NCBI RefSeq assembly: GCF_032444005.1
Contig: NC_091288.1
Span: 13,888,001 to 13,952,000, forward strand
Source of the DNA: Ranitomeya imitator
Taxonomy: Eukaryota
DNA length: 64,000 bases
Reading direction: 5' to 3'
Part shown: piece by piece, positions 1,709-60,898 of the stretch
How positions within the stretch are numbered: the stretch's first letter is position 1
Layout of the letters: every line of letters starts with the position of its first letter
The notes under the pieces: generated by a model
Seen by the model: the letters and a program-made list of their open reading frames with translations, nothing else
Database searches by the model: none
What the model was told of the DNA's origin: nothing
Translations under genes and position numbers: made by a program

Positions 1709-2577
1709 ATACTGGGGTCTTCTCCGGGCATCGACGTTCAGCACGGGCAGTAACATTTGATAAAACCTGGAACGGAGGCTCCATTGGACATGTGCTCACA
1801 GCACAAGAGCCACGTTCCCATGAGTGCAGGCTGTGCTGCGGTTTTGTGTATTTTGTGCTCTGGGTTAGAGAGAACGGTATCTCTGAACCTGGTGCAGACC
1901 GAGCTGATGAGACGTATCTGGCGTATTATATGGATCTATAACTATGGCTGACTCTTCGCTATGTCTTATCTGACGCTGCAGTGTCCGGGCTGACAATCCC
2001 ACAGTCGTGTCCTGGACGTTCCCAGGCTCCCAGGTCCCGGCATCTCTTATCTTAGTGACTGCACAGCTGCATTGGCGCGGTGCCTCCCAGACCCCTCCCG
2101 CCGTCTCCCACCTGCAGCTGCACCTAGAGGTAAAGCCCCTGGTGAAGGAGGTCGCCGCTCCCTGATAGCGCTGCGGAGAAACAACAAGCCTTTGTTCATG
2201 AGGGGCCATCCTAAAAATATTAATGAGAAAATGTGTTATCACCGCAGCCTGAAATACCGCGACTATAAGCAACGAATGCTGCAAATTACAACCTGTGCTG
2301 ATCACTGCAAATGTGAGATCAGGATAATGGGAGGACGCAAAAGGAATTGTACTTGTTACAGGAGGACTTAAAGGGGTTGTCCAGGATCTTAAAAAATGGT
2401 GACTTCATCCAAAAACAGCACCACCCCTGTCCACAGGTTGTGTCTGGTATTGTAGGTAGCTCCACTCGCCATATTACAGCTTCAGACACAACCTGAGTGC
2501 AGCTACTGGCGAGGAAACCAAGAGGTAACGGTGCGAAACGTCACATGGGGAGACTGAGGTCTGAGCATCCTGACACA

Positions 2578-4050
2578 CGGCCGCTGTACAGACCCCCTCA
2601 CCTCACAGGGCCGCTGTACAGACCCCCTCACCTCACAGGGCCGCTGTACAGACCCCCTCACCTCACAGGGCTGCTGTACAGACCCCCTCACCTCACACGG
2701 CCGCTGTACAGACCCCCTCACCTCACAGGGCCGCTGTACAGACCCCCCTCACCTCACAGGGCCGCTGTACAGACCCCCTCACCTCACAGGGCCGCTGTAC
2801 AGACCCCCTCACCTCACAGGGCCGCTGTACAGACCCCCTCACCTCACCAGGCCGCTGTACAGACCCCCTCACCTCACAGGGCCACTGTACAGACCCCGTC
2901 ACCTCACAGAGCCGCTGTACAGACCCCCTCACCTCACAGGGCCGCTGTACAGACCCCCTCACCTCACAGGGCCGCTGTACAGACCCCCTCACCTCACAGG
3001 GCCGCTGTACAGACCCCCTCACCTCACAGGGCCACTGTACAGACCCCCTCACCTCACAGGGCCGCTGTACAGACCCCCTCACCTCACAGGGCCGCTGTAC
3101 AGACCCCCTTCACCTCACAGAGCCGCTGTACAGACCCCCTCACCTCACAGGGCCACTGTACAGACCCCCTCACCTCACAGGGCCACTGTACAGACCCCTC
3201 ACCTCACAGGGCCGCTGTACAGACCCCCTCACCTCACAGGGCCGCTGTACAGACCCCCTCACCTCACAGGGCCGCTGTACAGACCCCCTTCACCTCACAG
3301 AGCCGCTGTACAGACCCCCTCACCTCACAGGGTCGCTGTACAGACCCCCTCACCTCACAGGGCCACTGTACAGACCCCCTCACCTCACAGGGCCACTGTA
3401 CAGACCCCTCACCTCACAGGGCCGCTGTACAGACCCCCTCACCTCACAGGGCCGCTGTACAGACCCCCTTCACCTCACAGGGCCGCTGTACAGACCCCCT
3501 TCACCTCACAGAGCCGCTGTACAGACCCCCTCACCTCACAGGGCCACTGTACAGACCCCCTCACCTCACAGGGCCACTGTACAGACCCCTCACCTCACAG
3601 GGCCGCTGTACAGACCCCCTCACCTCACAGGGCCGCTGTACAGACCCCCTCACCTCACAGGGCCGCTGTACAGACCCCCTCACCTCACAGAGCCGCTGTA
3701 CAGACCCCCTCACCTCACAGGGCCGCTGTACAGACCCCCTCACCTCACAGGGCCGCTGTACAGACCCCCTTCACCTCACAGAGCCGCTGTACAGACCCCC
3801 TCACCTCACAGGGCCGCTGTACAGACCCCCTCACCTCACAGGGCCGCTGTACAGACCCCCTTCACCTCACAGAGCCGCTGTACAGACCCCCTCACCTCAC
3901 AGGGCCACTGTACAGACCCCCTCACCTCACAGGGCCACTGTACAGACCCCCTCACCTCACAGGGCCGCTGTACAGACCCCCTCACCTCACAGGGCCGCTG
4001 TACAGACCCCCTCACCTCACAGGGCCGCTGTACAGACCCCCCCTCACCTC
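2578..4050. repeat. 30-bp minisatellite (GGCCGCTGTACAGACCCCCTCACCTCACAG)n, about 49 copies
   Basis: Directly visible tandem unit with single-base C/T indels; explains ORF 2497-4104. Confidence 0.98.
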
Positions 4051-5804
4051 CTGTGGCTCAGCTGCAGTAAAGTGGTGCAATGTCACCCCCTTGTGTTCAT
4101 GTAGTAATGTTACATAGGTTGACGAATGATTCTGCTCCATCACATTTATTTATTTAAGTTCAACTTTTCTCCAAAGTTCATACTGTAATAATAAATATCA
4201 TCAGGAAAGAAACACGAAGCATCAAAATCCGGCACCGAACCACACAATGGTGAAAATGTTTTCAATTAGTAATTTTTTTACAGATTTGTGCCAAAATCAA
4301 AGGCAGAAAAAATCAGAGACTCTTTGATGAAGATGCATGAGAAAACCACCTGTCGCCATGAGCGCATGGCCCACAGGATCTGCCGTCCTTGTGGCCGAGG
4401 TCTCTGTACCAGCACCAGAGCCGTCATCGGGGCATTATTCCCACTCCGCAATAGTTAACAGCCACCACCAGCCAATCATAGGCCGGCATATGACGTCACT
4501 GCCATGAGCCAGCGCGTCCACGCCTCAAAATGCATGAGTGATAGGACCGCTGCTAGATCGTGGCCAGGTTAGGGGGCAGAATGGAGACACGTGGGGCAGA
4601 ATGGAGTCATGTGCGTCAGGATGGAGAGATATATGGGGCAGAGTGAAGACACATGGGGGCAAGACGGCAGAACATATGGAGCCAGGGATAAGACACAAGG
4701 TGGCCTGGATGTGGGACATCACCACTGTAGGGGCAAATTAAGGGACATTATTACTGCTGTGATGTGTGTTATTTCTTGAGGATACTGTTATCATCTCTGC
4801 AGGAAATAACTGTGTTATTTCCTGCAGAGGTGAGTCCTGGCTGGAAGAAGTGATGACGGTCTGTGCTGGATGAAGAAGAAAAGCGAAGATTAAGGTCTTT
4901 AACTAGAGTTGTCACTGTTAAGTCATGGTGTGAATAGGACAATTGGAGGATCATGAAAAATTTGGGTACCTGTCTCCTGATCTTCATAATCGGTGAGATT
5001 GTTCCAATATCTGATCTGTAATCTGGCTATAACGAATTTTCACCCTTGAATAGGAGAGTTATATCTCTTATATTATACCTGTCTCTCACAGTCAATATCT
5101 GATTTTAGGGATGGGAATTGTGCTTGCCACCAAGAAAATACTGCCAGGAAGTGTTACCTTCTATTTGATGGTCAGTGGAGGGACATAGACTTCCCATAGT
5201 GCTATCTGTGGGTGATTTATTGTTTGCACTGTCTTTGCCCTTTACGTCCGGCTGGACATCATTTATGGATTAAGATATATGCGGTTGCTTTATTGATAAT
5301 ATTAAAAGTTCTGTTTTATTTACCATGCATTGCTATATTATTTTAACCCCTTCATGACCGGAGATATTTTCGTTTTGTTTTTTTGCACCCCTTCTTCCCA
5401 GAGCCATAACTTTTTTATTTTTCCATCAATATGGCCATGTGAGTGCTTTTTTTTTTTTTTTTGCGGGCCGAGTTTTACTTTTGAACGACACCATTGGTTT
5501 TAACATATCGTGTATTGAAAAAAGGGAAAAAAATTCCAAATGCGGTGAAATTGCAAGAAAAGTGCAATCCCACCGTTGTTTTTTGTTTGGCTTTTTTGCT
5601 AGGTTCACTAAATGCTAAAACTAAGCTGACATTATGATTCTCCAGGTCATTACGAGTTCATATGCATGTAAAGAAGCTGCGGAGACACCATCACGTGTTT
5701 CTCGACGCAAGCAGTGAATAGCCAGGCCTTTCCCCGGGAAGGAACAACCACGGGAAGGGCAGCATCCTATGAAGGAAAGCCACCTATGCCAAGCATGGTA
5801 TCCA

Positions 5805-5849
5805 TCCACAGACAGCTGTTTCAAGGTATTTGCCCCTCATCAGTGTGGA
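5805..5849 (-). ncRNA. Type I hammerhead ribozyme motif (minus-strand copy)
   Basis: Minus strand reads TCCACA-CTGATGA-GGGG-CAAATA-CCTT-GAAA-CAGCTG-TC-TGTGGA: intact CUGAUGA/GAAA core, 6-bp stem I, stem II with two G-U wobbles, GUC cleavage triplet. Confidence 0.8.
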
Positions 5850-6130
5850 GTAGGAATCTGGCTATTAGGAGCAATGCCTAGTAAAATGTGGATGGATAGG
5901 CCTGGCTATTCACTGCTTGCGTTGAGAAACACGTGATGGTGTCTCCGCAGCTTCTTTACATGCATCTGCATATTTCCCATAAGGGATGGGGGTAGTGTTC
6001 TGGAATCACTGCGTTGAGAAACACGTGATGGTGTCTCCGTGGTGTTGGATGTTTTGGTCTCCCCGAGGCCAATCATCTGTGCCTTTATAGCCTTTTTACT
6101 AGGCACTGCTCCTAATAGCCAGATTCCTAC

Positions 6131-6175
6131 TCCACACTGATGAGGGGCAAAAACCCCGAAACAGCTGTCTGTGGA
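6131..6175 (+). ncRNA. Type I hammerhead ribozyme motif
   Basis: TCCACA(6131-36) CTGATGA(6137-43) GGGG-CAAAAA-CCCC(6144-57) GAAA(6158-61) CAGCTG(6162-67) TC(6168-69) TGTGGA(6170-75): all core nucleotides present, perfect stems I and II, short palindromic stem III as in Penelope/retrozyme minimal hammerheads. Confidence 0.88.
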
Positions 6176-7029
6176 TGGATACCATGCTTGGCATAGGTGG
6201 CTTTCCTTCATAGGATGCTGCCCTTCCCGTGGTTGTTCCTTCCCGGGGAAAGGCCTTGGCTATTCACTGCTTGCGTCGAGAAACACGTGATGGTGTCTCC
6301 GCAGCTTCTTTACATGCATCTGCATATTTCCCATAAGGGATGGGGGCAGTGTTCTGGAATCACTGCGTTGAGAAACACGTGATGGTGTCTCCGCGGTGTT
6401 GGATGTTTTGGTCTCCCCGAGGCGAATCATCTGTGCCTTATTACGAGTTCATAGACACCAAACATGTCTAGGTTGTTTTTTATCTAAGTGGTGAAAAATA
6501 ATTCCAAACTTTGTTAAAAAAAAAATTTGCGGCATCTTCCAAAACACGTAGCGTCTCCATTTTTCATGATCTGGGGCTTATTTTTTGCGCACAGAGCTGA
6601 CGTATTTAATGATACCATTTTGGTGCAGATACGATTTGTTGATCATCTGTTATTGCATTTTAATGTCACAGCGACCAAAAAACCGTAATTCTGGTGTTTT
6701 GACTTTTTTCTCGCTAAGCCGTTTAGCGATCAGGTTAATTCTTTTTTTTATTGATAGATCGGTCAATTCTGAACGTGGCGATACCAAATATGTGTAGGTT
6801 TAATTTTATTTTTATTGTTTTATTTTGAATGGGGCAAGAGGGGGTGATTTGAACTTTTTATATTTTTTTTTAATATTTTTAAAACCTTTTTTTTATTCTT
6901 GGTATGCTTCAATAGTCTCCATGGGAGACTAGAAGCTGCTGTAACCCGATCGGCTCTGCTACATACAGGTAATGCTCAGATCACCTACATGTAGCAGAAT
7001 ACCTCACTTGCCATGAGCGCCGACCAACG

Positions 7030-8832: not shown

Positions 8833-11571
8833 CAGTGGGGGAAATAAGTATTTGATCCCTTGCTGATTTTGTAAGTTTGCCCACTGACAAAGATATGAGC
8901 AGTCTATAATTTTAAGGTCGGTTAATTTTAGCATTGAGACATAGAATATCAAATATAAAATCCAGAAAATCACATTGTATAAATTATATAAATTTCTTTG
9001 CATTTTGCAATGAGAAATAAGTATTTGATCCCTCTGGCAAACAAGATTTAATACTAGGTGGCAAAACCCTTGTTGGCAAGCCCAGCAGTCAGACGTTTCT
9101 TGTAGTTGATGATGAGGTTTGTGCACATGTCAGGAAGAATTTTGCTCCACTCCTCTTTGCAGATCATCTCTAAATCATTAAGATTTTGATGCTGTCACTT
9201 GGCAACTCGGAGCTTCAACTCCCTCCATAAATTTTCTGTGGGATGAAGGTCTGCAGACTGGCTAGGCCTCTCCATGACCTTAATGTGCTTCTTTTTGAGC
9301 CACTCCTTTGTTGCCTTGTCTCTATGTTTTGGGTCATTGTCTTGCTGGAAGACCCTGCCATGACCTATTTTTAATGTCCTGTCACTCAGGATTTTACAGT
9401 ACATGGCTCCATCCATTCGCCCATTGATGCGGTGATGTAGTCCTGTGCCCTTAGCAGAGAAACACCCCAAAACATAATGTTTCCACCACCATGCTTGACA
9501 GTGGGGATGGTGTTCTTTGGGTCATAGGCAGCATTTATAATAATAATAATATAATAATAATAATAATTTTTATTTATATAGCGCCAACATATTCCGCAGC
9601 GCTTTACAAATTATAGAGGGGACTTGTACAGACAATAGACATTACAGCATAACAGAAATACAGTTCAAAACAGATACCAGGAGGAGTGAGGGCCCTGCTG
9701 CTCGCAAGCTACAAACTATGAGGAAAAGGGGAGACACGAGAGGTGGATGGTAACAATTGCTTTAGTTATTCGGACCAGCTATAGTGTAAGGCTCGGGTGT
9801 TCATGTAAAGCTGCATGAGCCAGTTATCTGCCTAAGTATGTAGCAGTACAGACACAGAGGGCTAATAACTGCATAAAGTGTATGAGAACATGATGCGAGG
9901 AACCTGATTGTTTTTTTTTTTTATAAATAGGCCACACAGGGATCGTTAGGTTAATGCATTGAGGCGGTAGGCCAGTCTGAACAAATGAGTTTTTAGGGTA
10001 CGCTTAAAACTGTGGGGATTGGGGATTAATCGTATTAACCTAGGTAGTGCATTCCAAATAATCGGCGCAGCACGTGTAAAGTCTTGGAGACGGGAGTGGG
10101 AGGTTCTGATTACTGAGGATGCTAACCTGAGGTCATTAGCGGAGCGGAGGGCACGGGTAGGGTGGTAGACTGAGACCAGAGAGGAGATGTAGGGTGGTGC
10201 TGAGCCATGGAGTGCTTTGTGGATGAGGGTAGTAGTTTTGTACTGGATTCTGGAGTGGATGGGTAGCCAGTGTAATGACTGGCACAGGGTAGAGGCATCG
10301 GTGTAACGGTTGGTGAGGAATATGATCCTGGCTGCAGCATTCAGGACAGATTGGAGCGGGGAGAGTTTGGTAAGAGGGAGGCCGATTAGTAGAGAGTTAC
10401 AATAGTCCAGACGAGAATGAATAAGTGAAACAGTAAGAGTTTTTGCAGAGTCGAAATTAAGAAAAGGGCGAATTCTAGAAATGTTTTTGAGATGCAGGTA
10501 AGAAGAGCGAGCCAGTGATCGGATGTGGGGGGTGAATGAAAGGTCAGAATCAAGGATGACCCCAAGGCAGCGGGCATGTTGCTTTGGAGTAATGGTGGAA
10601 CCGCACACGGAGATGGCAATGTCAGGCAAAGGTAGGTTAGTAGAGGGAGAGAACACGAGGAGTTCAGTTTTTGACAGGTTTAGTTTCAGATAGAGGGAGG
10701 ACATGATGTTAGAGACAGCGGTAAGACAATCACTGGTGTTTTCTAAAAAGGTCGGTGTGATATCGGGAGCAGAAGTGTATAATTGGGTGTCGTCAGCATA
10801 GAGATGGTACTGGAAACCAAATCTACTGAAGAGCATTTCTCTTCCTCCAAACACGGCGAGTTGAGTTAATGCCAAAGACCTCAATTTTAGTCTCATCTGA
10901 TCACAGCACCTTCTCCCAATCACTCACAGAATCATCCAGGTGTTCATTGACAAACTTCAGACGGGCTGCACCTGTGTCTTCTTGAGCAGGGGGACCTTGC
11001 GGGCACTGCAGGATTTTAAACCTTTATGGTGTAATGTGTTACCAATGGTTTTCCTGGTGACTGTGGTCCCAGCTGCCTTACGATCATTAACAAGTTTCTC
11101 TGTGTAGTTTCAGGCTGATCTCTCACCTTCCTCATGATCAAGGATACCCCACGAGGTGAGATTTTGCACGGTGCCCCAGATCGATATCGATTGACAGTCG
11201 TTTTGTATTTCTTCCATTTTCTTACTATTGCACCAACTGTTGTCTCCTTCTCACCCAGCGTCTTACTTATGGTTCTGTAGCCCATTCCAGCTTTGTGCAG
11301 GTCTATGATCTTGACCCTGACATCCTTAGAAAGCTCTTGGGTCTTGCCCATGTTGTAGAGGTTAAAGTCTGACTGATTGAGTCTGTGGACAGGAGTCTTT
11401 TATAAAGGGGACTATGTAAGACAGCTGTCTTTAATGCAGGTAACGAGTTGATTAGTAGCGTCTAACTGGTCTGTAGGAGCCAGAACTGAATTTTATTTTT
11501 GATATTCTATCTCTCAATGTTAAACTTAACCTACCCTTAAAATTATAGACTGTTGAGGGATCTAATCATTA
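8833..11571 (-). mobile_element. Defective Tc1-family transposon split by an L2 insertion; one TIR truncated
   Basis: TA|CAGTGGGGGAAATAAGTATTTGATCC TIR at 8833. Transposase fragments [22 protein letters not shown] (11351-11016) and ...FQQDNDPKH...[11 protein letters not shown] (9470-9195). Tc1 sequence resumes at 10832 after the L2. Confidence 0.9.
9537..10831 (-). mobile_element. 5'-truncated L2 (CR1-clade) LINE with RT C-terminal half
   Basis: YHLYADDTQLY motif (YADD at 10789-10800) in ORF 9946-10923; 3' tail GCGCTATATAAATAAAAATT(ATT)n; flanked by AGCATTT at 9530-9536 and 10832-10838. Confidence 0.92.
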
Positions 11572-14065: not shown

Positions 14066-14525
14066 CTAGATTGTGGCCCGATTCTAACGCATCGGGTATT
14101 CTAGAATATGCATGTCCCCGTAGTATATGGACAATGATGATTCCAGAATTCGCGGCAGACTGTGTCCGTCGCTGATTGGTCAAAGCAACCTTTATGACAT
14201 CATCGTCGCCATGGCAACCATTATGACATCATCGTCGCTGTGCCCGTTGCTGATTGGTCGAGGCCTGGTGGCATCGACCAATCAGACGCGGGATGTCTAC
14301 ATCCTTTATGACATCATCGTCGCTGTGCCCATTGCTGATTGGTCGAGGCCTGGCGGCCTCGACCAATCAGAGACGCAGGATTTCTACGTCAATACTGTGC
14401 CGGTCTCTGATTGGTTGAGGCCTGGCGGCCTCGACCAATCAGAGAGCCGGGATTTCCAGGACAGACAGACAGACAGACAGAAAGACAGACAGACGGAAAA
14501 AGCCTTAGGCAATTATATATATAGA
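14066..14525 (-). mobile_element. Non-autonomous Helitron (460 bp)
   Basis: Minus strand: A|TCTATATATATAATT ... CCCGAT-GCGTTAGA-ATCGGG hairpin ... CTAG|T. Removing it restores TACTACTA+TAATACTG of the host minisatellite, with no TSD. Confidence 0.88.
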
Positions 14526-15863
14526 TAATACTGTCCCTATATACAAGAATATAACTACTATAATACTGTCCCTATGTACAGGAATGTAACTACTATAATA
14601 CTGCTCATATGTACAAGAATATAACTACTATAATACTGCCCCTATGTACAAGAATATAACTACTATAATACTGCCCCCTATGTACAAAAATATAACTACT
14701 ATAATACTGCCCCTATGTACAAGAATATAACTGCTATAATACTGCCCCTATATACAAGAATATAACTACTATAATACTGCCCCTATATACAAGAATATAA
14801 CTACTATAATACTGCCCCTATATACAAGAATATATCTACTATAATACTGCCCCTATGTACAAGAATATAACTACTATAATACTGCCCCTATATACAAGAA
14901 TATATCTACTATAATACTGCTCCTATGTACAAGAATATAACTAGTATAATACTGCTCCTATGTACAAGAATATAACTACTATAATACTGCCCCTATGTAC
15001 AAGAATATAACTACTATAATACTGCCCCCTATGTACAAAAATATAACTACTATAATACTGCCCCTATGTACAAGAATATAACTGCTATAATACTGCCCCT
15101 ATATACAAGAATATAACTACTATAATACTGCCCCTATATACAAGAATATAACTACTATAATACTGCCCCTATATACAAGAATATATCTACTATAATACTG
15201 CCCCTATGTACAAGAATATAACTACTATAATACTGCCCCCTATGTACAAAAATATAACTACTATAATACTGCCCCTATGTACAAGAATATAACTGCTATA
15301 ATACTGCCCCTATATACAAGAATATAACTACTATAATACTGCCCCTATATACAAGAATATAACTACTATAATACTGCCCCTATATACAAGAATATAACTA
15401 CTATAATACTGCCCCTATGTACAAGAATATAACTACTATAATACTGCCCCTATGTACAAGAATATAACTACTATAATACTGCTCCTATGTACAAGAATAT
15501 AACTACTATAGTACTGCCCCTATATACAAGAATATAACTACTATAATACTGCCCCTATGTACAAGAATATAACTACTATAGTACTGCCCCTATATACAAG
15601 AATATAACTACTATAATACTGCCCCTATGTACAAGAATATAACTACTATAATACTGCCCCTATATACAAGAATATAACTACTATAATACTGCCCCTATGT
15701 ACAAGAATATAACTACTATAGTACTGCCCCTATATACAAGAATATAACTACTATAATACTGCCCCTATGTACAAGAATATAACTACTATAATACTGCCCC
15801 TATGTACAAGAATATAACTACTATAATACTGCTCCTATGTACAAGAATATAACTACTATAAAA

Positions 15864-27169: not shown

Positions 27170-29982
27170 CTAAATGCCTAATGATGATAAATATAATCCA
27201 CCTGTGTGTAATCAAGTCTCCGTATAAATTCACCTGCTCTGTGATAGTCTCAGGGTTCTGTTTGAAGCACAGAGAGCATCATGAAGACCAAGGAACACAA
27301 CAGGCAGGTCCGTGATACTGTTGTGGAGAAGATTAAAGCCGGATTTGGATACAAAATAATTTCCAAAACTTTAAACATCCCAAAGAGCACTGTGCAAGCG
27401 ATCATATTGAAATGGAAGGAGTATCATACCACTGCAAATCTACCAAGACCCGGCCGTCCCTCTAAACTTTCATCTCAAACAAGGAGAAGACTGATCAGAG
27501 ATGCAGCCAAGAGGCCCATGATCACTCTGGATGAACTGCAGAGATCTACAGCTGAGGTGGGACAGTCTGTCCATAGGACAACGATCAGTCGTACACTGCA
27601 CAAATCTGGCCTTTATGGAAAAGTGGCAAGCAGAAAGGCATTTCTCAAAGATATCCATAAAAAGTGGCGTTTAAAGATTGCAACAAGCCACCTGGGAGAC
27701 ACCAAACATGTGGAAGAAGGTGCTCTGGTCAGATGAAACCAAAATCAAACTTTTTGGCAACAATGCCAAACGATATGTTTGGCGTAAAGGCAACACAGCT
27801 CATCACCCTGAACACACCATCCCCACTGTCAAACATGGCGGTGGCAGCATCATGGTTTGGGCCTGCTTTTCTTCAGCAGGGACAGGGAAGATGGTTAAAA
27901 TTGTTGGGAAGATGGATGGAGCCAAATACAGGACCATTCTTGAAGAAAACCTGTTGGAGTCTGCAACAGACCTGAGACTGGGATGGAGATTTGTCTTCCA
28001 ACAAGACAATGATCCCAAACATAAAGCAAAATCTACAATGGAATGGATCACAAATAAATGTATCCAGGTGTTAGAATAGCCAAGTCAGAGTCCAGACCTC
28101 AATCCAACCGAGAATCTGTGGAAAGAGCTGAAAACTGCTGTTCACAAATGACCTCCATCCAACCTCACTGAGCTCCAGCTGTTTGCCAAGGAAGAACGGG
28201 CAAGAATTTCAGTCTCTCCATGTACAAAACTGATAGAGACAGAACCCAAGCGACTTGTGTGAGGAACCTGTATAAAATAAGTAGTAGTTTCTCTGCCTGT
28301 TAGCACCATAGCTGAGGGATTTTTGGCACTCCTAACCATGGTGCTGAGAAACACATGGTTGCTGTAAAACCCCCTTCTTTTTCCCCTTCCCATTACTTCA
28401 GAGTTTAGCTTTCCTTCTCAGAGAGTGTGGGGGTTTTAGGAGAGCCAAAGGTATTTACGACTGGCATTTCCTGCCGTGTAAGCTCTTGTCCAGCTATAAG
28501 TGAACTAGAAACTTCTAGGATTCATGCAAGTCCTTTGTCTTGTTTTTGCAAGATATTACACAACCCGTTTACGTAAAAAACACGAAAATATATATTCTTT
28601 ACACCCCTCGGTGGATCTATTCACCACATAAAACCTGAGCTTCTAGCTCCATCTAGTAAAGTAGGTATTTCTCTGTAAATATGCATCACAGATAGTACAT
28701 ATTTGATCTCATTAGAATGCCCATGTTAATCAGAGATGAATGCTGGGTTCGTTATGACTATGACATGTTTGGTAGCGAAGTTATAGAAATTAGAGAAAAT
28801 AGTTTAAAGTTTACTCAGAATGTAGAGAGAGGAGGGTCTGGATAAACCAGCCTTTCTGTGATGTCACAGCCTTAAGGTTTTAAGTGTCTGGCAGGCTCTG
28901 AGGAGTCACTTCTGCTTGATTTCTTGTCTCCTCCTGAGGCCAACAGCACGTCCAATGAGCTGGGACGTATGGTTGCCTGCCATGCTTTGAACATGTGAGT
29001 GTTACCTTTTCTCATTTAATCCCTGTTTATTTCATAATTACCCTTGTACATATTTGCAATTGTCTCATTTGTAACATCTTTATAAAATATTTTTGATAAA
29101 GCACTGCCTAATTTTTATGGGATATAATATTTATATTAGTTCATTCTCCATGCTCTAAACGTACCCTAAGTCTTCTGAAGGGAAATACGCTACTGTTGTG
29201 TTGGGTTAGCTTCGGACCCATTTAATCGAAGCTGGTGGCAGCGATAGTGTGCTGACTTTTGGGATTATGTTGTAGCGACTGCGGCGTTGATAATTATTGT
29301 TCCTGCCTGAGTGGGAGTAGTTTATTGCGTCGCTGCAGCGTGCCCAATAGCCAGTACATAGCAGGCAGCCTTTCTGGCGACTAATTACCCAGGGTGCAGT
29401 ACCTAATCTGACCTGAGAGTAAGGGGGGCGCCAGAGAGCTGCAAGTGTTAAGTGGAACTGTAAGCGGGATATACATAAATCCCTGCAGTTTGTGGTATAT
29501 TGAAAAGCAGTGGGATACCTAAAATAAGCCCCTGCTGTAAACTAAGAGGTCAATAGCCTTGTGTGTTTTCTCATCACATTGTAGCAGTGGAGGGATAACT
29601 AAGATAAGCCCCCCTGCACAGGTGATAGCCGTCTGTTGGCCTAAAGTCACCCCAACCCGTGACGTAGGGGTGACGGTCACGGTGTGAATCGTGACAAATT
29701 GGTGGCAGCGTTCAGGGGAATCCTGACAACTTGTAATCGCAGCAAAAGGCGGCGCAACAAAGTATTAAGTTACAGGGGCCGAATAATATTGCACCCCCAC
29801 TTTGCAGGTTTTAAATTTCCACAAAAATGTAAAATAACCAATAAATTTCATTCAACTTCACAATTGTGTTCCACTTGTTGATTCTTCACCAAAAATTTAC
29901 ATTTAGTATCTTTATGTTTGAAGCACGATATGTGGGAAAAGGTTGAAAAGTTCCAGGGGCCGAATACTTTCACAAGGCACTG
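27170..29982 (+). mobile_element. Tc1-family transposon (5' end missing), frameshifted transposase, split by an LTR insertion
   Basis: ORFs 27281-27736 (MKTKEHNRQVRD...) and 27678-28079 (WSDETK...QQDNDPKH). Tc1 sequence resumes at 29734 and ends ...TTTCACAAGGCACTG|TA at 29982. Confidence 0.92.
28258..29728 (+). mobile_element. Solo-LTR-like insertion (Gypsy-like), 1471 bp
   Basis: TG...CA termini flanked by ACTTG at 28253-28257 and 29729-29733; internal TGACA-AAT-TGGTGGCAGCG (29692-29710) resembles an LTR end plus tRNA-Leu PBS. Confidence 0.75.
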
Positions 29983-30629: not shown

Positions 30630-30676
30630 ATTGGAGGAGCCGCCTGTCGCTCACATCAGTGCTCGCCCCTGATTGG
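30630..30676 (-). promoter_or_regulatory. Pair of inverted CCAAT (NF-Y-type) boxes in the CpG-rich proximal promoter
   Basis: GATTGG with ATTGG at 30630-30634 and 30672-30676, 42 bp apart, just upstream of the GC-rich 5' leader. Confidence 0.55.
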
Positions 30677-30994
30677 CCGGCGGCGGCTGCTGCTCCCTCC
30701 CCCGGTGTCGGAGCTGTGATCCTCGGCGGTGAATGCTGCAGAGCGCAGTGGGGAGCGGGAGGAGCGGCCGTCACCGCGCACATCGCCGGCAGCACGACCC
30801 CGCCGCCCCCGGGCACTGCACCAAGACCCCCGGCACCTCCAGGAGCTCACCGGCATCACACAGGCGTGTCCTGCCGCCCAGGATCCCGGGATCTGCAGAG
30901 CAGGGGTCCACCCGGAGCGTGCAGCACTGCAGCAGGTACCCTGTGCACCCCCCACAGCTCCAGGTCACCGCTGCGCCCCCCTGCCACCCCCACC

Positions 30995-31960
30995 ATGGGC
31001 ACCGTCCTCTCCCTGTCCCCTGTGCCTGGCAAGGCAGGACCCCTGGATGAGAAGAAGCCAGAGCCCCCTGGGGTGGGAGGCGGATACCTGGCCATCCCCA
31101 ACAGCAAAAATGGAGGCAGCAAAGCGGAGAAAAGCCTTAAGAGACACTCCGTGCTCATCTCCGCGCTCACCTGGAAGAGGCTGGTGGCGGCTTCCGCCAA
31201 GAAGAAGAACGCCAAGAAGATTAACCCCAACCCTGGACCCATCCACGGCCCGCTGCTGCCCAACAACAACCCGGTGGAGCAGCTCAATCACGAGAACCTG
31301 CGGAAATCTCAGGTCAGTCCGGGTCGTAGGGAACCCAAGCCTGTGCCCGTGCCCACCGTACCCATCAGCTCCATCGAAGGCCAGAAGATCCAGCAACAGC
31401 AGCTGGTGGCCGTGCAGAAGCAAGCGAGCGGCCGGTCCCTGTGCTCGCCCCGTCGGGTCATAGTCCAGGCCTCCACCGGAGAGCTCCTCCGATGTCTAGG
31501 AGAATTCGTGTGCCGTCGCTGCTATAAACTGAAGGAGTTAAGTCCGGGAGAACCCACCATGTGGTTCCGAAACGTCGACCGATCACTTCTCCTTCAAGGC
31601 TGGCAAGACCAAGGCTTCATCACGCCCGCCAACTTGGTGTTTGTCTACCTGCTCTGTAGAGAGGCCATTGGGGATGAACTGGCCACCGAGTACGAGCTCC
31701 AAGCCGCGTTCCTCACTTGCCTCTACTTGGCTTATTCCTATATGGGCAATGAAATTTCCTATCCGCTCAAGCCCTTCCTGGTGGAGACTGACAAGGAGGT
31801 CTTCTGGCAACGCTGCCTGAGCATCATTGACCGGATGAGTGCCAAAATGCTGCAGATCAACTCCGACCCCCACTTTTTCACACAGGTCTTCCAAGATCTG
31901 AAGAATGAAGGCGAAACCAGAGAATCCATTGGGCACTGGACTATAAATTTGGACCGTTAA
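30995..31960 (+). CDS. CDK5R2: Cyclin-dependent kinase 5 activator 2 (p39), single coding exon, 321 aa
   Basis: Kozak CACCATGG; MGTVLSLSP (Gly2 myristoylation). p39-type [22 protein letters not shown], rather than p35 RHSIISVLPWKRIV. CDK5-activator core [20 protein letters not shown]...[12 protein letters not shown]...[26 protein letters not shown]; C-terminus HWTINLDR. Confidence 0.96.
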
Positions 31961-34305: not shown

Positions 34306-36024
34306 TTACCCCTTTCATAACTGTTTGTTTTACAACATTGACAAGAAGCATCATGGCCGCCTCCAGACACCTTAAAGGGATGCTCTTATATGGCACAAAC
34401 TGCATAATAATCCGGTGCAAAGTACTTTTATAAATGTAAAATGCAACTTGCAGTGGAGTCAGATTGAGGGAGCCAGTTTGTGTTGCATTTTTACGTTGCA
34501 AAAAAAAACATTGCATAATGGTGAAAAATTGGAAATGACAAGCCACGCCCCCTATTGCAGCACAGCCCCGCCTACTCATGACCAATTCCCCCCCCCCCCC
34601 TCCGTGCCCTAAGGCTGTACATAAGGTGCACTCTGCCTCTAGTATGAGGGCAAAACAGTGATTGCTTCTTCTTTTTAGTTTTTATAGTTATTCTGCCATT
34701 TTGTTGCTAGATATAAGCGTCCTGCTGCTGCATGATTGCAGAAATCCGTCTGTCCGTGAGTAGATCTGCGATCCCAGTGTAAAGCTCCAGCTCCATTAGT
34801 AGAATACAATGTAATTGCCAGGCTGCAAATGAAACCTGTGAATTTCCAAAGCGCTTAACACAAAGAGATTCCTGCGCTCCTGAAATTCTCATTCACACGG
34901 AACTGCGTCCCACAATCTATATTTATATGGTCGGGGGACATTCTCCGCACCCGGCTTTGTGCACTTATTTTTAGATTGTTCTTATTTTTATGTACAATTT
35001 CTGATAATGGAAAGCGATTACCGTCCTACATTAGAATATCAGCTGTTTGACACCCACCATACTTTATACTGCAGCTGTTCCTAAATCTTTTACATGGGAC
35101 CACCGTATGGTTATAAATATGATTGACAGTTGTCATAGTCCCGCCCCTTGTTAGGGTAAAGCCACGTGTTATGTATTTTACCTGCAGATTTCTGCATTTC
35201 TTTACAGTACCAGGTATAAGGACGAGTCTTTACCTTTTGTCATCCTCATGATGCTAACATTATCTGCATGAGAAGTGACCAGCGGTGCTGTTTTTTTTAT
35301 ATTTGTTGCTTGTCATTTTCTGTTATGGAGACAGCACAGATTTATTGCAGATTTCCCATGGGAAGGAAGAATCTGCAATCAAGTTCTATTGTGAATCTTG
35401 CTGTGGATTCTTTGTGGATTGTGCAGCGAATTTACAAAACGATAAATATCAAAACAAAAAAAGTCAGCACTCTTCTGACCAGCCCCGTGGCTTCCTATGG
35501 TGACACTTTTCCTGATCCCCCTGAGTGTCTGTTTATTGGCCTCTGGGGGAAACAGGTTTTGACATAAGGCGACTGCAGCCATAACAGCACGGAGGTCACA
35601 GGCGGCTGCAATCTCCAGCTTGTAGCTCTACAGATGTTGCACAAATAAACTATCATCTCCTGCCAAATGAGCCTGTTATGGCTGGATGCAAGTTACAGAT
35701 TAGTAACAGCCGAGAGCCACAGATGGAGGAACCGCCATCATCCAATTGTCCCATCCAACTAATTAGATGCATTCAATACTGATGTATGTACACAGTGACT
35801 GCACCAGCAGAATAGTGAGTGCAGCTCTGGAGTATAATACAGGATGTAACTCAGGATCAGTAATGTATGTACACAGTGACGGCACCAGCAGAATAGTGAG
35901 TGCAGCTCTGGAGTATAATACTCAGGATCAGTAATGTATGTACACAGTGACTACACCAGCAGAATAGTGAGTGCAGCTCTGGAGTATAATACAGGATGTA
36001 ACTCAGGATCAGTAATGTAATGTA

Positions 36025-41090: not shown

Positions 41091-43289
41091 CTAGATGGTG
41101 GCCCTATTCTAACGCATCGGGTATTCTAGAATATGTATGTCCACGTAGTATATTGCCCAGCCACGTAGTATATTGCACAGAGCCACATAGTATATTGCCC
41201 AGCCACGTAGTATATTGCACAGAGCCACGTAGTATACAGCACAGATACGTAGTATACTGCCCAGTCACATAGTATGTTGTCCAGTCACGTAGTATATTGC
41301 CCAGCCCACGTAGTATATTGCCCAGCCACGTAGTATATTGCCCAGCCACGTAGTATATTGCCCAGCCACGTAGTATATTGCACAGTGACGTAGTATATTG
41401 CCCAATCACATAGTATATTGCCCAGTGACGTAGTATACTGCCCAGCCACGTAGTATATTATCCAGTCACGTAGTATAGTGCCCAGCCACGTAGTATATTG
41501 CCCAGTCACGTAGTATATTGCCCAGCCACGTAGTATATTGCTCAGTCACGTAGTATAGTGCCCAGCCACGTAATATATTGCCCAGTCACGTAGTATATTG
41601 CCCAGCCACGTAGTATATTGCTCAGTCACGTAGTATATTGCCCAGCCACGTAGTATATTGCTCAGTCACGTAGTATATTGCCCGTCCACGTAGTATATTG
41701 CTCAGTCACGTAGTATATTGCCCAGTCACATAGTATATTGCCCAGCCACATAGTATATTGCTCAGTCACGTAGTATATTGCCCAGTCACGTAGTATATTG
41801 CCCAGCCACGTAGTATATTGCCCAACCACGTAGTATATTGCCCAGTCACGTAGTATATTGCCCAACCACGTAGTATATTGCCCAGTCACGTAGTATATTG
41901 CCCAACCACGTAGTATATTGCCCAGTCACGTAGTATATTGCCCAACCACGTAGTATATTGCTCAGTCACGTAGTATATTGCCCAGTCACGTAGTATATTG
42001 CCCAGCTACGTAGTATATTGCCCAGCCACGTAGTATATTGCCCAGCCACGCAGTATATTGCACAGCCCTCGTAGTATATTGCCCAGCCCACGTAGTATAT
42101 TGCCCAGTTACGTAGTATATTGCTCAGTCACGTAGTATATTGCCCAGCCACGTAGTATATTGCCCAGCCACGCAGTATATTGCACAGCCCTCGTAGTATA
42201 TTGCCCAGCCCATGTAGTATACTGCCCAGTCACGTAGTATATTGCCCAACCACGTAGTATATTGCCCAGTCACGTAGTATATTGCCCAACCACGTAGTAT
42301 ATTGCTCAGTCACGTAGTATATTGCCCAGTCACGTAGTATAATGCCCAGCTACGTAGTATATTGCCCAGCCACGTAGTATATTGCCCAGCCACGCAGTAT
42401 ATTGCACAGCCCTCGTAGTATATTGCCCAGCCCACGTAGTATATTGCCCAGCTACGTAGTATATTGCCCAGCCACGTAGTATATTGCCCAGCCACGCAGT
42501 ATATTGCACAGCCCTCGTAGTATATTGCCCAGCCCATGTAGTATATTGCCCAGTTACGTAGTATATTGCTCAGTCACGTAGTATATTGCCCAGTCACGTA
42601 GTATATTGCCCAGTCCGCGTAGTGTATAATACAGCCCACATACGGTAATATATTGCACAGCCCACGTATTATATAGCAATGTGGGTACCATATCCCTGTT
42701 AAAAAAAAAGAAAATAAATAATCGTTATATACTCACCCTCCGCTGGCCCCTGGATCCAGGAAGCGTTTACCGACGCTCCTCGCGCGCTCCGGTCTGAAGA
42801 GTGCATTGCGATCTCGCGAGATGATGACGTGCGGTCTCGCGATGCATGGAGCGGTCACCGGGGCGTCGCGAGGAGCGGGAAAGGCCTGTTCCTGATCCGA
42901 CGGACGGTGAGTATATAACTATTTTTTATTTTTAACATTAGATCTTTTTACTATTCATGCTGCATAAGCAGCATGAATAGTAAAAAGTTGGTCGCACAGG
43001 GTTAATAGCAGCATTAACCGAGTGCGTTACACCGCGGTCAACGCTGCCATTAACCCTGTGTGAGCGCTGACTGGAGGGGAGTACGTAGCGGGCACTGACT
43101 GCGGGGAGGAAGGAGCGACCATTTTTCCGCCGGACTGTGCCCGTCGCTGATCAATCGTGGCTGTTTTGTCACGACCAATCAGCGACTTGGATTTCCATGA
43201 CAGACAGAGGCCGCGACCAATGAATATCCGTGACAGACAGAAAGACAGACAGACAGACGGAAGTGACCCTTGGACAATTATATAGTAGA
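41091..43289 (-). mobile_element. Non-autonomous Helitron (2.2 kb) related to 14066-14525, carrying an internal minisatellite
   Basis: Minus strand A|TCTACTATATAATTGTCC ... GATGCGTTAGAATAGGGCCACCATCTAG|T; shares both terminal regions and the (GACA)n tract with the 14066 copy. Confidence 0.87.
41145..42680. repeat. 20-bp minisatellite (GTAGTATATTGCCCAGCCAC)n, about 75 copies, inside the Helitron
   Basis: Visible tandem unit. Confidence 0.97.
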
Positions 43290-43877: not shown

Positions 43878-46800
43878 CCATGGTGGAGAGAATGTGCAGC
43901 ACCTGTCCATGGTCGGAGAGAATGTGCAGCACCTGTCCATGGTGGAGAGAATGTGCAGCACCTGTCCATGGTGGGAGAGAATGTGCAGCACCTGTCGATG
44001 GCGGGAGAGAATGTGCAGCATCTGTCCATGGCGGAGAGAATGTGCAGCACCTGTCCATGGTCGGAGAGAATGTGCAGCATCTGTCCATGGCGGAGAGAAT
44101 GTGCAGCACCTGTCCATGGTGGGAGAGAATGTGCAGCACCTGTCGATGGCGGGAGAGAATGTGCAGCACCTGTCCATGGTGGGAGAGAATGTGCAGCACC
44201 TGTCCATGGTCGGAGAGAATGTGCAGCATCTGTCCATGGCGGAGAGAATGTGCAGCACCTGTCCATGGTGGGAGAGAATGTGCAGCACCTGTCCATGGCG
44301 GAGAGAATGTGCAGCACCTGTCCATGGCGGAGAGAATGTGCAGCACCTGTCCATGGCGGGAGAGAATGTGCAGCACCTGTCCATGGTGGGAGAGAATGTG
44401 CAGCACCTGTCCATGGCGGGAGAGAATGTGCAGCACCTGTCCATGGCGGGAGAGACTCTGCAGCACCTGTCCATGGCGGAGAGAATGTGCAGCACCTGTC
44501 CATGGCGGAGAGAATGTGCAGCACCTGTCCATGGTGGGAGAGAATGTGCAGCACCTGTCCATGGTGGAGAGAATGTGCAGCACCTGTCCATGGTGGAATG
44601 TACAGCATCTGTCCATGGTGGGAGAGAATGTGCAGCACCTGTCCATGGTGGGAGAGAATGTGCAGCACCTGTCCATGGTGGGATAGAATGTGCAGCACCT
44701 GTCCATGGTGGGAGAGAATGAGCAGCATCTGTCCATGTTGGGGAGAATGTGCAGCACCTGTCCATGGTGGGAGAGAATGTGCAGCACCTGTCCATGTTGG
44801 GGAGAATGTGCAGCACCTGTCCATGGCGGGAGAGAATGTGCAGCACCTGTCCATGGCGGGAGAGAATGTGCAGCACCTGTCCATGGCGGGAGAGAATGTG
44901 CAGCACCTGTCCATGGTGGGCAAGAATGTGCAGCACCTGTCCATGGTGGGAGAGAATGTGCAGCGCCTGTCCATGGTGGGCAAGAATGTGCAGCACCTGT
45001 CCATGGTGGGAGAGAATGTTCAGCATCTGTCCATGGTGGGAGAGAATGTGCAGCACCTGTCCATGTTGGGGAGAATGTGCAGCACCTGTCCATGGCGGGA
45101 GAGAATGAGCAGCATCTGTCCATGGTTTTAGAGGAAGTGCAGCACCTGTCCATGGTGGGAGAGAATGTACAGCATCTGTCCATGTTGGGGAGAATGTGCA
45201 GCACCTATCCATGGTGGGAGAGAATGTGCAGCACTTGTCCATGTTGGGGAGAATGTGCAGCACCTGTCCATGGTGGGAGAGAATGTACAGCATCTGTCCA
45301 TGTTGGGGACAATGTGCAGCACCCGTCCATGGTGGGAGAGAATGTGCAGCACTTGTCCATGGTGGGAGAGAATGTGCAGCATCTGTCCATGGTGGGAGAG
45401 AATGTGCAGCACCTGTCCATGGAGGGAGAGAATGTGCAGCACCTGTCCATGGTGGGAGAGAATGTGCAGCACCTGTCCATGGTGGGAGAGAACGTGCAGC
45501 ACCTGTCCATGGTGGGAGAGAATGTGCAGCACCTGTTCCTGGTGGGAGAGAATGTGCAGCACCTGTCCATGGTGGGAGAGAATGTGCAGCACCTGTCCAT
45601 GGTGGGAGAGAATGTGCAGCACCTGTTCCTGGTGGGAGAGAATGTGCAGCACCTGTCCATGGTGGGAGAGAATGTGCAGCACCTGTCCATGGTGGGAGAG
45701 AATGTGCAGCACCTGTCCATGGTGGGAGAGAATGTGCAGCACCTGTCCATGTTGGGGAGAATGTGCAGCACCTGTCCATGGCGGGAGAGAATGTGCAGCA
45801 CCTGTCCATGGTGGGAGAGAATGTACAGCACCTGTCCATGGTGGGAGAGAATGTGCAGCACCTGTCCATGTTGGGGAGAATGTGCAGCACCTGTCCATGG
45901 TGGGAGAGAATGTGCAGCACCTGTCCATGGTGGGGAGAATGTGCAGCACCTGTCCATGGCGGGAGAGAATGTGCAGCACCTGTCCATGGTGGGAGAGAAT
46001 GTGCAGCACCTGTCCATGGCGGGAGAGAATGTGCAGCACCTGTCCATGGCGGGAGAGAATGTGCAGCACCTGTCCATGGCGGGAGAGAATGTGCAGCACC
46101 TGTCCATGGTGGGAGAGAATGTGCAGCACCTGTCCATGGTGGGAGAGAATGTGCAGCACCTGTCCATGGTGGGAGAGAATGTGCAGCACCTGTCCATGGT
46201 GGGAGAGAATGTGCAGCACCTGTCCATGTTGGGGAGAATGTGCAGCACCTGTCCATGGTGGGAGAGAATGTGCAGCACCTGTCCATGGGGGGAGAGAATG
46301 TGCAGCACCTGTCCATGGCGGGAGAGAATGTGCAGCACCTGTCCATGGCAGGAGAGAATGTGCAGCACCTGTCCATGGCGGGGGAGAATGTGCAGCATCT
46401 GTCCATGGCGGGAGAGAATGTGCAGCACCTGTCCATGGTGGGAGAGAATGTGCAGCACCTGTCCATGGTGTTAGAGGAAGTGCAGCACCTGTCCATGGTG
46501 GGAGAGAATGTGCAGCACCTGTCCATGGCGGGAGAGAATGTGCAGCACCTGTCCATGGCGGGGGAGAATGTGCAGCACCTGTCCATGGCGGGGGAGAATG
46601 TGCAGCATCTGTGAATGGCGGGAGAGAATGTGCAGCACCTGTCCATGGTGGGAGAGAATGTGCAGCACCTGTCCATGGTGTTAGAGGAAGTGCAGCACCT
46701 GTCCATGGTGGGAGAGAATGTGCAGCACCTGTCCATGGCGGGAGAGAATGTGCAGCACCTGTCCATGGCGGGGGAGAATGTGCAGCATCTGTCCATGGCG

Positions 46801-48195
46801 GGAGAGAATGTGCAGCACCTGTCCATGGTGGGAGAGAATGTGCAGCACCTGTCCATGGTGTTAGAGGAAGTGCAGCACCTGTCCATGGTGGGAGAGAATG
46901 TGCAGCACCTGTCCATGGTGGGAGAGAATGTGCAGCACCTGTCCATGGCGGGAGAGAATGTGCAGCACCTGTCCATGGCGGGGGAGAATGTGCAGCATCT
47001 GTCCATGGCGGGAGAGAATGTGCAGCACCTGTCCATGGTGGGAGAGAATGTGCAGCACCTGTCCATGGTGTTAGAGGAAGTGCAGCACCCGTCCATGGTG
47101 GGAGAGAATGTGCAGCACCTGTCCATGGCGGGAGAGAATGTGCAGCACCTGTCCATGGTGGGAGAGAATGTGCAGCACCTGTCCATGTTGGGGAGAATGT
47201 GCAGCACCTGTCCATGGTGGGAGAGAATGTGCAGCACCTGTCCATAGGGGGAGAGAATGTGCAGCACCTGTCCATGGCGGGAGAGAATGTGCAGCACCTG
47301 TCCATGGCAGGAGAGAATGTGCAGCACCTGTCCATGGCGGGGGAGAATGTGCAGCATCTGTCCATGGCGGGAGAGAATGTGCAGCACCTGTCCATGGTGG
47401 GAGAGAATGTGCAGCACCTGTCCATGGTGTTAGAGGAAGTGCAGCACCTGTCCATGGTGGGAGAGAATGTGCAGCACCTGTCCATGGTGGGAGAGAATGT
47501 GCAGCACCTGTCCATGGCGGGAGAGAATGTGCAGCACCTGTCCATGGCGGGGGAGAATGTGCAGCATCTGTCCATGGTGGGAGAGAATGTGCAGCACCTG
47601 TCCATGGTGGAGAGAATGTGCAGCATCTGTCCATGGCGGGAGAGAATGTGCAGCACCTGTCCATGGTGGGAGAGAATGTGCAGCACCTGTCCATGGTGTT
47701 AGAGGAAGTGCAGCACCTGTCCATGGTGGGAGAGAATGTGCAGCACCTGTCCATGGCGGGAGAGAATGTGCAGCACCTGTCCATGGCGGGGGAGAATGTG
47801 CAGCATCTGTCCATGGCGGGAGAGAATGTGCAGCACCTGTCCATGGTGGGAGAGAATGTGCAGCACCTGTCCATGGTGTTAGAGGAAGTGCAGCACCTGT
47901 CCATGGTGGGAGAGAATGTGCAGCACCTGTCCATGGTGGGAGAGAATGTGCAGCACCTGTCCATGGCGGGAGAGAATGTGCAGCACCTGTCCATGGCGGG
48001 GGAGAATGTGCAGCATCTGTCCATGGCGGGAGAGAATGTGCAGCACCTGTCCATGGTGGGAGAGAATGTGCAGCACCTGTCCATGGTGTTAGAGGAAGTG
48101 CAGCACCCGTCCATGGTGGGAGAGAATGTGCAGCACCTGTCCATGGTGTTAGAGGAAGTGCAGCACCTGTCCATGGTGTTAGAGGAAGTGCAGCA
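43878..48195. repeat. 30-bp minisatellite (CCATGGTGGGAGAGAATGTGCAGCACCTGT)n, about 144 copies
   Basis: Visible tandem unit with 29/30-bp variants; source of all long ORFs at 43.7-48.3 kb. Confidence 0.99.
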
Positions 48196-54338: not shown

Positions 54339-54508
54339 TTCTTACACTGTAACAAGTTTGATTTGCTATGAAACAATGATCTTTTGAGTTGAGTGTTCGC
54401 TGCGTCTATTTTGGTGAAGTAGAGGGAGAACTCTGTTACATTTCAGGACCATGGAGAGCATTAAGAAGCATTTGTTATTTGCACAGAGACTGAATGCCTC
54501 CCAGTATA

Positions 54509-60595: not shown

Positions 60596-60898
60596 NNNNN
60601 NNNNNNNNNNNNNNNNNNNNNNNNNNNNNNNNNNNNNNNNNNNNNNNNNNNNNNNNNNNNNNNNNNNNNNNNNNNNNNNNNNNNNNNNNNNNNNNNNNNN
60701 NNNNNNNNNNNNNNNNNNNNNNNNNNNNNNNNNNNNNNNNNNNNNNNNNNNNNNNNNNNNNNNNNNNNNNNNNNNNNNNNNNNNNNNNNNNNNNNNNNNN
60801 NNNNNNNNNNNNNNNNNNNNNNNNNNNNNNNNNNNNNNNNNNNNNNNNNNNNNNNNNNNNNNNNNNNNNNNNNNNNNNNNNNNNNNNNNNNNNNNNNN
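60596..60898. other. Assembly gap (303 N)
   Basis: Run of N. Confidence 1.

Follow-up and report, generated by a model that had tools for sequence, protein, structure and literature searches.

Does a hammerhead ribozyme cut the RNA of its own retroelement before that RNA is reverse transcribed, and is the template then linear or circular? Both questions bear on Penelope-like elements (PLEs) and on retrozymes, in whose life cycles the role of the hammerhead is still called unknown in reviews, and both are made testable by a junction within a short insert in the dendrobatid frog Ranitomeya imitator, whose genome is repeat-rich and measures 6-7 Gb. The insert lies in a stretch of 64,000 nt (NC_091288.1, positions 13,888,001 to 13,952,000 of the forward strand), hereafter the window, from whose first letter all coordinates are counted. 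We read it as a non-LTR (long terminal repeat) retrozyme inserted by PLE-type target-primed reverse transcription, and we put the probability of this reading at roughly 0.78. The element itself adds only a new family, from a dendrobatid frog, to a class established in every amphibian genome examined. The copy, however, is intact enough for the integration event to be read from it, with the full PLE-type layout laid out on a 354-nt passenger.

The limits of the insert are sharp. Across the window the 14-mer ATTACGAGTTCATA has just two perfect occurrences, 5649-5662 and 6440-6453, and by local alignment both of them abut the limits of homology to a repeat unit. Between them lie the 777 bp (5663-6439) that a first-pass annotation, made from the letters alone, had already described as a non-coding insert bounded by an exact repeat. 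That annotation also proposed a monomer of about 354 nt; repeat finding and self-BLAST recovered the period (5903-6085 against 6257-6439, 98% match), while the monomer limits of 6084-6437 had to be refined to 6086-6439. At the right edge ATTACGA is present where the tandem register would give TATAGCC. We numbered the unit m1-354 along 6086-6439, taking the full unit as reference, and mapped the rest by local alignment against a unit dimer, which placed both the deleted partial copy and the inverted arm that had been suspected. The insert and its borders are composed as follows.

5649-5662, no strand: left target-site duplication ATTACGAGTTCATA, an exact match to 6440-6453 that adjoins the end of unit homology.
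5663-5886, minus strand: inverted 5′-truncated copy, the reverse complement of m9-233 (224 nt aligned against 6094-6318; 4 substitutions, 1 indel).
5805-5849, minus strand: degraded hammerhead in the inverted arm, with CCUU for CCCC in the 3′ strand of helix II and A changed to U in loop 2.
5887-5898, plus strand: TGTGGATGGATA, m85-96, the start of the direct part, with no difference from the full unit.
Between m96 and m167: deletion in the direct part, with the 70 nt of m97-166 absent.
5899-6085, plus strand: partial direct copy, m167-354 (187 nt aligned against 6252-6439; 4 substitutions, 1 indel).
6086-6439, plus strand: full 354-nt unit, m1-354, non-coding, 51% G+C, ending directly at the right duplication without poly(A).
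6131-6175, plus strand: type I hammerhead, from direct reading, a descriptor scan, a sub-threshold HH9 match and helix covariation.
6272-6302 and 6364-6394, plus strand: 31-nt internal repeat with CACGTG, two copies within the full unit (repeat finding, self-BLAST).
6440-6453, no strand: right target-site duplication ATTACGAGTTCATA, an exact match to the left copy.

The partial copy and the full unit together make a partial tandem of 1.5 units, and the direct part as a whole, at 553 nt, is longer than one unit. Reading of the sequence at 6439|6440 gave no poly(A), A-rich tail or 3′ microsatellite, and repeat finding in the insert gave no LTR and, apart from the unit, no direct repeats at the termini; it did give two inverted-repeat arms, of 163 and 80 nt. 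The longest open reading frame (ORF) of the unit, 101 aa, had no relatives in a search of a protein collection, and no reverse transcriptase or GIY-YIG coding sequence was found adjoining the insert. Closed into a circle, the unit is predicted to fold at -121.9 kcal/mol with 67% of its bases paired (z = -2.3 against shuffles).

The ribozyme of the full unit can be read base by base. Helix I pairs 6131-6136 (UCCACA) with 6170-6175 (UGUGGA), is open-ended and has a UAC internal loop; the core CUGAUGA occupies 6137-6143 and GAA 6158-6160, and C17 is 6169. Helix II consists of 4 bp, GGGG/CCCC (6144-6147 with 6154-6157), under the 6-nt loop CAAAAA, and helix III of 2 bp, AC/GU, under a cap formed by the palindromic tetraloop AGCU (6161-6168); helix III with its loop, ACAGCUGU, is a perfect palindrome. 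All invariant bases of the conserved core are present, with A6161-U6168, G6144-C6157 (G10.1-C11.1) and C6169 as H17, and the cleavage site is predicted to lie between 6169 and 6170, after the GUC at 6167-6169. A descriptor scan for the core, G10.1-C11.1 and helices II, III and I of at least 3, 2 and 5 bp, respectively, matched the window at 6131-6175 alone and did not match any of 300 dinucleotide-preserving shuffles. The type I hammerhead and its GUC had been recognized correctly at first sight, whereas the description as a ‘minimal’ motif of the PLE type must be given up. Minimal hammerheads, typical of PLE pseudo-LTRs, are without helix III and loop contacts; the frog motif, in which helix II has 4 bp and a 6-nt loop, helix I an internal loop and helix III 2 bp, is a canonical hammerhead of the retrozyme type.

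Covariation in other animals agrees with the proposed helices. A search of metagenome contigs with the core pattern of the window ribozyme, helix II being left free, gathered 17 loci from other animals, which together with the window ribozyme form a set of 18 sequences. Because the pattern itself fixed core, loop 2 and helix III, these carry no weight. The proposed helices were paired in 88.7% of cells, as against 25-41% when the partners were slid by 1-3 columns, and compensatory changes were seen in 6/6 pairs of helix I and 3/4 pairs of helix II (nine of 12 pairs overall, the changes lying in helices I and II). In the seventeen contigs (L001-L017, from environmental or host-associated metagenomes) the core, loop 2 (CAAAAA) and the palindromic helix III (ACAGCUGU) are those of the frog element, but the flanks are unrelated. 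They show no likeness to the frog unit beyond the ribozyme and are not members of its family; presumably they are retrozyme or PLE copies in invertebrate host DNA. In one of them, L015 (534-909), a 390-nt self-complementary stretch surrounds the ribozyme, and the repeat structure of these loci offered no useful junctions.

Fold predictions further indicate the form in which the ribozyme would act. The cofold of a ribozyme dimer has an 8-bp intermolecular helix III and reaches -43.5 kcal/mol versus -38.0 for two monomers, and the active fold of the monomer (-11.3 kcal/mol) is not its minimum-energy fold (-19.0). The ribozyme is therefore expected, on these calculations, to be active as a dimer. 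The prediction matches the hammerheads of amphibian retrozymes and newt satellite, which are weak as monomers and efficient as dimers (PMC7229834). Elsewhere in the insert little is left of the motif: the degraded hammerhead at 5805-5849 is without G10.1-C11.1, fails the descriptor and is absent from the Rfam matches at E values up to 10, and the partial direct copy retains only 12 nt of ribozyme.

These features place the insert among the non-LTR retrozymes. In metazoans the class was defined in 2020 with axolotl Rtz331 and Rtz353, whose units are 331 and 353 nt long (Cervera and de la Pena 2020, PMC7229834); it comprises small non-coding tandem units with type I hammerheads, duplications of more than 4 bp and circular RNA of 170-400 nt (PMC7229834). 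At 354 nt the frog unit falls well within the range of such units (~170-400 nt, up to 972), is likewise non-coding and arranged head to tail, and combines a canonical type I hammerhead having a weak palindromic helix III with a well-paired predicted circle; there is no LTR, primer-binding site or polypurine tract in the insert, and its duplication is 14 bp long. It differs in its G+C content, 51% versus a reported value of <50%. Unlike active retrozymes, which have at least two consecutive units each with a complete hammerhead, the locus has 1.5 direct units and one intact ribozyme, a shortfall that says nothing of the family. Non-LTR retrozymes were present in 7/7 amphibian genomes sampled, with a mean consensus of 316 bp (Li, Clavereau and Pollet 2026, bioRxiv 10.64898/2026.07.22.740005). 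Within this known class the frog family appears to be new as far as the searchable literature goes, where the ribozyme sequence had no match among 8.4 million papers; the axolotl units of the 2020 supplement are unrelated to the frog unit outside the ribozyme core.

The layout of the insertion is typical of PLEs. Insertions of the latter are 5′-truncated partial tandems, often with an inverted 5′-truncated copy at the 5′ end and with a duplication of variable length (Craig et al. 2021, PMC8557442), and the frog insert shares this layout in its entirety: a 5′-truncated partial tandem, an adjacent inverted 5′-truncated copy, a duplication and no poly(A). The findings agree with the initial proposal of a protein-free, retrozyme- or Penelope-related retroelement in this frog. 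The purified PLE protein of the anole nicks and extends both DNA strands, with a preference for ATT, and begins reverse transcription where there is no homology to the nicked DNA (Frangieh et al. 2024, PMC11167929). Priming of both target strands would account naturally for the oppositely oriented copies. The frog duplication also starts with ATT, a likeness that, as a single case, carries no weight. The insert departs from PLEs in lacking an ORF for a reverse transcriptase or GIY-YIG endonuclease, in its period of 354 nt versus several kb and in its canonical versus minimal hammerhead, and the 30-40-bp ‘tail’ of PLEs is not recognizable from one frog copy. Penelope elements have been reported generally in anuran genomes (PMC12822217).

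The junction between the inverted arm and the direct part is where the ribozyme and the integration meet. The direct part begins at 5887 with TGTGGATGGATA, the 12 nt that in the full unit come right after the GUC at 6167-6169 and with which the predicted 3′ cleavage product would start. This 12-mer is found in the window only at 5887 and 6170 on the plus strand and at 5799 on the minus strand, with 0.03 occurrences expected by chance. The inversion junction at 5886|5887 is blunt, with neither microhomology nor filler on either side, and it can be placed in a single way: the base to the left of 5887 is A, versus C at m84, and 5887 itself is T, versus the A (the complement of m8) that would follow had the arm continued. 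The chance that the direct part would start at the one position defined by the ribozyme is about 1 in 354 (~0.3%). Because the junction falls on the first base after the GUC at these odds, a ribozyme-made 5′ end is suggested, and on balance we think that the reverse-transcribed RNA had one. On the same reading, the template still held an uncut site at 6169|6170 and reverse transcription started at m354 and not at a cleaved 3′ end, so that the RNA would have exceeded one unit in length and had a linear 5′ end.

The inverted arm appears to have a history of its own. It spans the ribozyme site, with a damaged helix II. The partial copy, being without m97-166, could not have served as its template, and from the full unit the arm differs by an indel at m171. 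Both points favour a separate template for the arm and a separately primed second complementary DNA (cDNA). More tentatively, and at somewhat less than even odds, we propose that 5886|5887 is a genomic fossil, recording that the hammerhead cut the RNA in vivo before reverse transcription, that the template was a linear RNA longer than a unit and that both target strands were primed.

The steps of such an integration would be as follows. A more-than-unit transcript of a tandem source array would be cut by its hammerhead, probably as a dimer, leaving a 5′ end at m85, and a PLE reverse transcriptase/GIY-YIG endonuclease supplied in trans would introduce staggered nicks 14 bp apart. The bottom-strand nick would prime a cDNA from m354, without poly(A), up to the ribozyme-made 5′ end, this first cDNA passing one uncut ribozyme site and skipping 70 nt on the way. 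From the top-strand nick the second cDNA would be primed on another unit and extend from m233 to m9. Finally, the polymerase would run off the 5′ end of the RNA and jump to the end of the other cDNA, producing a blunt inversion junction at the cleavage site.

Several observations weigh against the retrozyme reading or against the interpretation of its junction. The coincidence at the junction is one event and was recognized post hoc. The anole PLE does without ribozyme cleavage in vitro, its cleavage site coincides with the end of no RNA-seq read (PMC11167929), and its reverse transcription starts are identical on both strands (PMC11167929), while the cDNA starts inferred here, m354 and m233, are 121 nt apart. 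In Rfam, no hammerhead family reached its gathering score anywhere in the window, and the top match, Hammerhead_HH9 (RF02275), obtained 24.3 bits versus a threshold of 52, with E = 0.0022 in a permissive search of 1.1 kb and about 0.1 when rescaled to the whole window. The covariation set was gathered with a pattern taken from the core of the window ribozyme, so that helices I and II are its only independent part. Neither the 64 kb nor collections without frog DNA yielded a second, independent copy of the unit; self-BLAST of the window gave no other copies of the unit or its flanks and hence no paralogous empty site, and a family-specific 23-mer had 0 exact matches in genome and viral contig collections, which hold no frog DNA. 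Lastly, no PLE gene was found in the window, and the only reverse transcriptase fragment, at 9946-10923 on the minus strand (RVT_1 E = 4e-5, with YADD and LDYCNSLL motifs), looks LINE-like (long interspersed nuclear element).

Other routes to the same insert have to be weighed against these points. The published retrozyme model leads from circular RNA to tandem cDNA, and a reverse transcriptase travelling along a unit-length circle for about 1.5 rounds of 354 nt, until the circle was re-cut by its own hammerhead, would likewise leave a 553-nt direct part that ends at the cleavage site; the predicted circle is indeed more stable than its shuffles. However, the same RNA would then have been copied in both passes, whereas 4 substitutions, 1 indel and a 70-nt deletion separate the partial from the full copy; mutation after insertion would have to be invoked for these differences and could account for them. 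Furthermore, m84|85 must be read through once and then cut, and the inverted arm requires an additional template. We regard rolling-circle copying as a less likely but still credible source of this insert. It is more doubtful still that we are looking at a severely 5′-truncated autonomous PLE of which only the pseudo-LTR was copied. PLE insertions are heavily 5′-truncated and have hammerheads in their pseudo-LTRs (PMC8557442), and the Xenopus retrozyme families are sister to PLE pseudo-LTRs (bioRxiv 10.64898/2026.07.22.740005), but a tandem period of 354 nt does not fit a PLE unit of 3-4 kb. Moreover, the ribozyme is canonical in its loop 2 and helix I internal loop where those of PLE pseudo-LTRs are usually minimal, and the insert adjoins neither reverse transcriptase nor GIY-YIG coding sequence.

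A 14-bp duplication with a 5′ inversion also resembles L1 twin priming, and the window does contain reverse transcriptase fragments of LINE-like appearance. Had a LINE enzyme of the L1 type mobilized the RNA, though, a poly(A), an A-rich tail or a 3′ microsatellite would be looked for at 6439|6440, where there is none, and the two cDNAs should cover different parts of the RNA, whereas the arm, m9-233, overlaps the direct copy in unit coordinates; we consider classical twin priming very improbable and have rejected it on these two grounds. The long inverted repeat within the insert could also be attributed to events at the DNA level, either capture of a hammerhead-satellite fragment during break repair or a DNA transposon of the foldback or MITE (miniature inverted-repeat transposable element) type. 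The inverted arm, however, matches internal sequence and not the other terminus, leaving no terminal inverted repeats, and the duplications of cut-and-paste transposons are usually 2-10 bp, shorter than the 14 bp seen here. A junction at an RNA cleavage site would be left without explanation at the DNA level, and this route, the least credible of those considered, was rejected as well.

The internal copies of the insert differ by about 2%. Anuran substitution rates of 1-3 x 10^-9 per site and year (as given in PMC12822217) would set an upper limit of roughly 3-11 million years on its age, provided that the copies started out identical; differences passed on from the template would make it younger. 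The first-pass annotation had called the element young; this holds in a relative sense only, and the perfect 14-bp duplication constrains age little. Six differences among the three copies are transitions (m21, m71, m72, m192, m262 and m309), and in element sense each of them is C in the full unit versus T, with 0 of the G/A kind. Since the arm is on one strand of the chromosome and the partial copy on the other, the C/T bias tracks the element and not the chromosome, and it weakly suggests changes before or during integration (n = 6, p ~0.03). As only one intact plus-strand ribozyme is present, no unit-length RNA or circle can arise from the locus by double cleavage, which makes it a dead-end copy. 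Transcription, if it occurs, could give rise to a long hairpin between the 229-nt inverted arms, which are separated by 207 nt.

Several known systems resemble parts of this insert. Satellite 2 of newts and salamanders (Epstein and Gall 1987; Forster et al. 1988) is likewise a repeat of amphibians, about 330 bp long, whose type I hammerhead works mainly as a dimer via an extended helix III. It forms long satellite arrays in caudates, however, whereas the frog element is a single, dispersed, duplication-bounded insertion in an anuran, and the two unit sequences are unrelated. With Rfam HH9, an amniote intronic hammerhead, the frog ribozyme has its core in common, as well as loop 2 (CAAAAA) and an internal loop of the UAC type within helix I, and the literature has noted that amniote intronic hammerheads are similar to those of amphibian retroelements. 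The frog helix III is shorter, though, and the frog motif belongs to a mobile repeat, being neither intronic nor conserved. If the junction is read correctly, the insert would also parallel the non-LTR retrotransposons R2, RTE and L1Tc, whose 5′ ends carry hepatitis delta virus (HDV)-like ribozymes, in that a self-cleaving ribozyme sets the 5′ end of the reverse-transcribed RNA, although both the ribozyme class and the retroelement class differ. For PLE and retrozyme hammerheads a role in setting the 5′ end has been proposed without in vivo evidence. An accumulation of this family's 5′ ends and inversion junctions at m85 across the genome would be the first in vivo evidence of a hammerhead role in the life cycle of retrozymes or PLEs.

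The 31-nt repeat, which contains a CACGTG palindrome, is present twice per unit, 92 nt apart. Further copies of the repeat are located at 5918-5948 and 6010-6039, with an inverted copy at 5679-5709. The two inferred starts of reverse transcription, m233 and m354, are 16 and 45 nt downstream of the two repeat copies; it is speculative, but the 29-nt difference between these offsets is close to the 30-40-nt ‘tail’ of PLEs.

The surroundings of the insert are dense in tandem arrays and transposon fragments. The LINE-like fragment at 9946-10923 has no PDB relative and is flanked by Tc1/mariner transposase fragments (9195-9470 and 11016-11351), all outside the insert; the whole of 9195-11351 on the minus strand is a nested transposon insertion and not a PLE. 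As a PLE partner of the retrozyme the fragment was rejected, being LINE-like, situated between Tc1 fragments and outside the duplication-bounded insert. At 27281-27736 (plus strand) a transposon remnant encodes N-terminal helix-turn-helix domains of a Tc1/Sleeping Beauty-type transposase (HTH_Tnp_Tc3_2 E = 1.5e-20, HTH_SB E = 8e-18). An intact single-exon CDK5 activator gene of 321 aa, beginning MGTVLSLSP, occupies 30995-31957 on the plus strand, and its enclosing ORF, 30659-31960, matches Pfam CDK5_activator at E = 4e-97. An identical protein is recorded for NCBI assembly GCA_032444005.1, which a preprint lists as aRanImi1, Ranitomeya imitator. A run of 303 N at 60596-60898 is an assembly gap or a masked stretch. 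The tandem arrays are the following.

2574-4050: 30 bp x 49.
14525-15861: 35 bp x 38.
41141-42627: 20 bp x 74.
43878-48195: 30 bp x 145.
49928-54339: 86 bp x 51.

Long ORFs that overlap these arrays are probably repeat artefacts. A 71-bp repeat at 35849-35992 resembles, when the consensus units are compared by eye, the reverse complement of part of the 86-bp unit.

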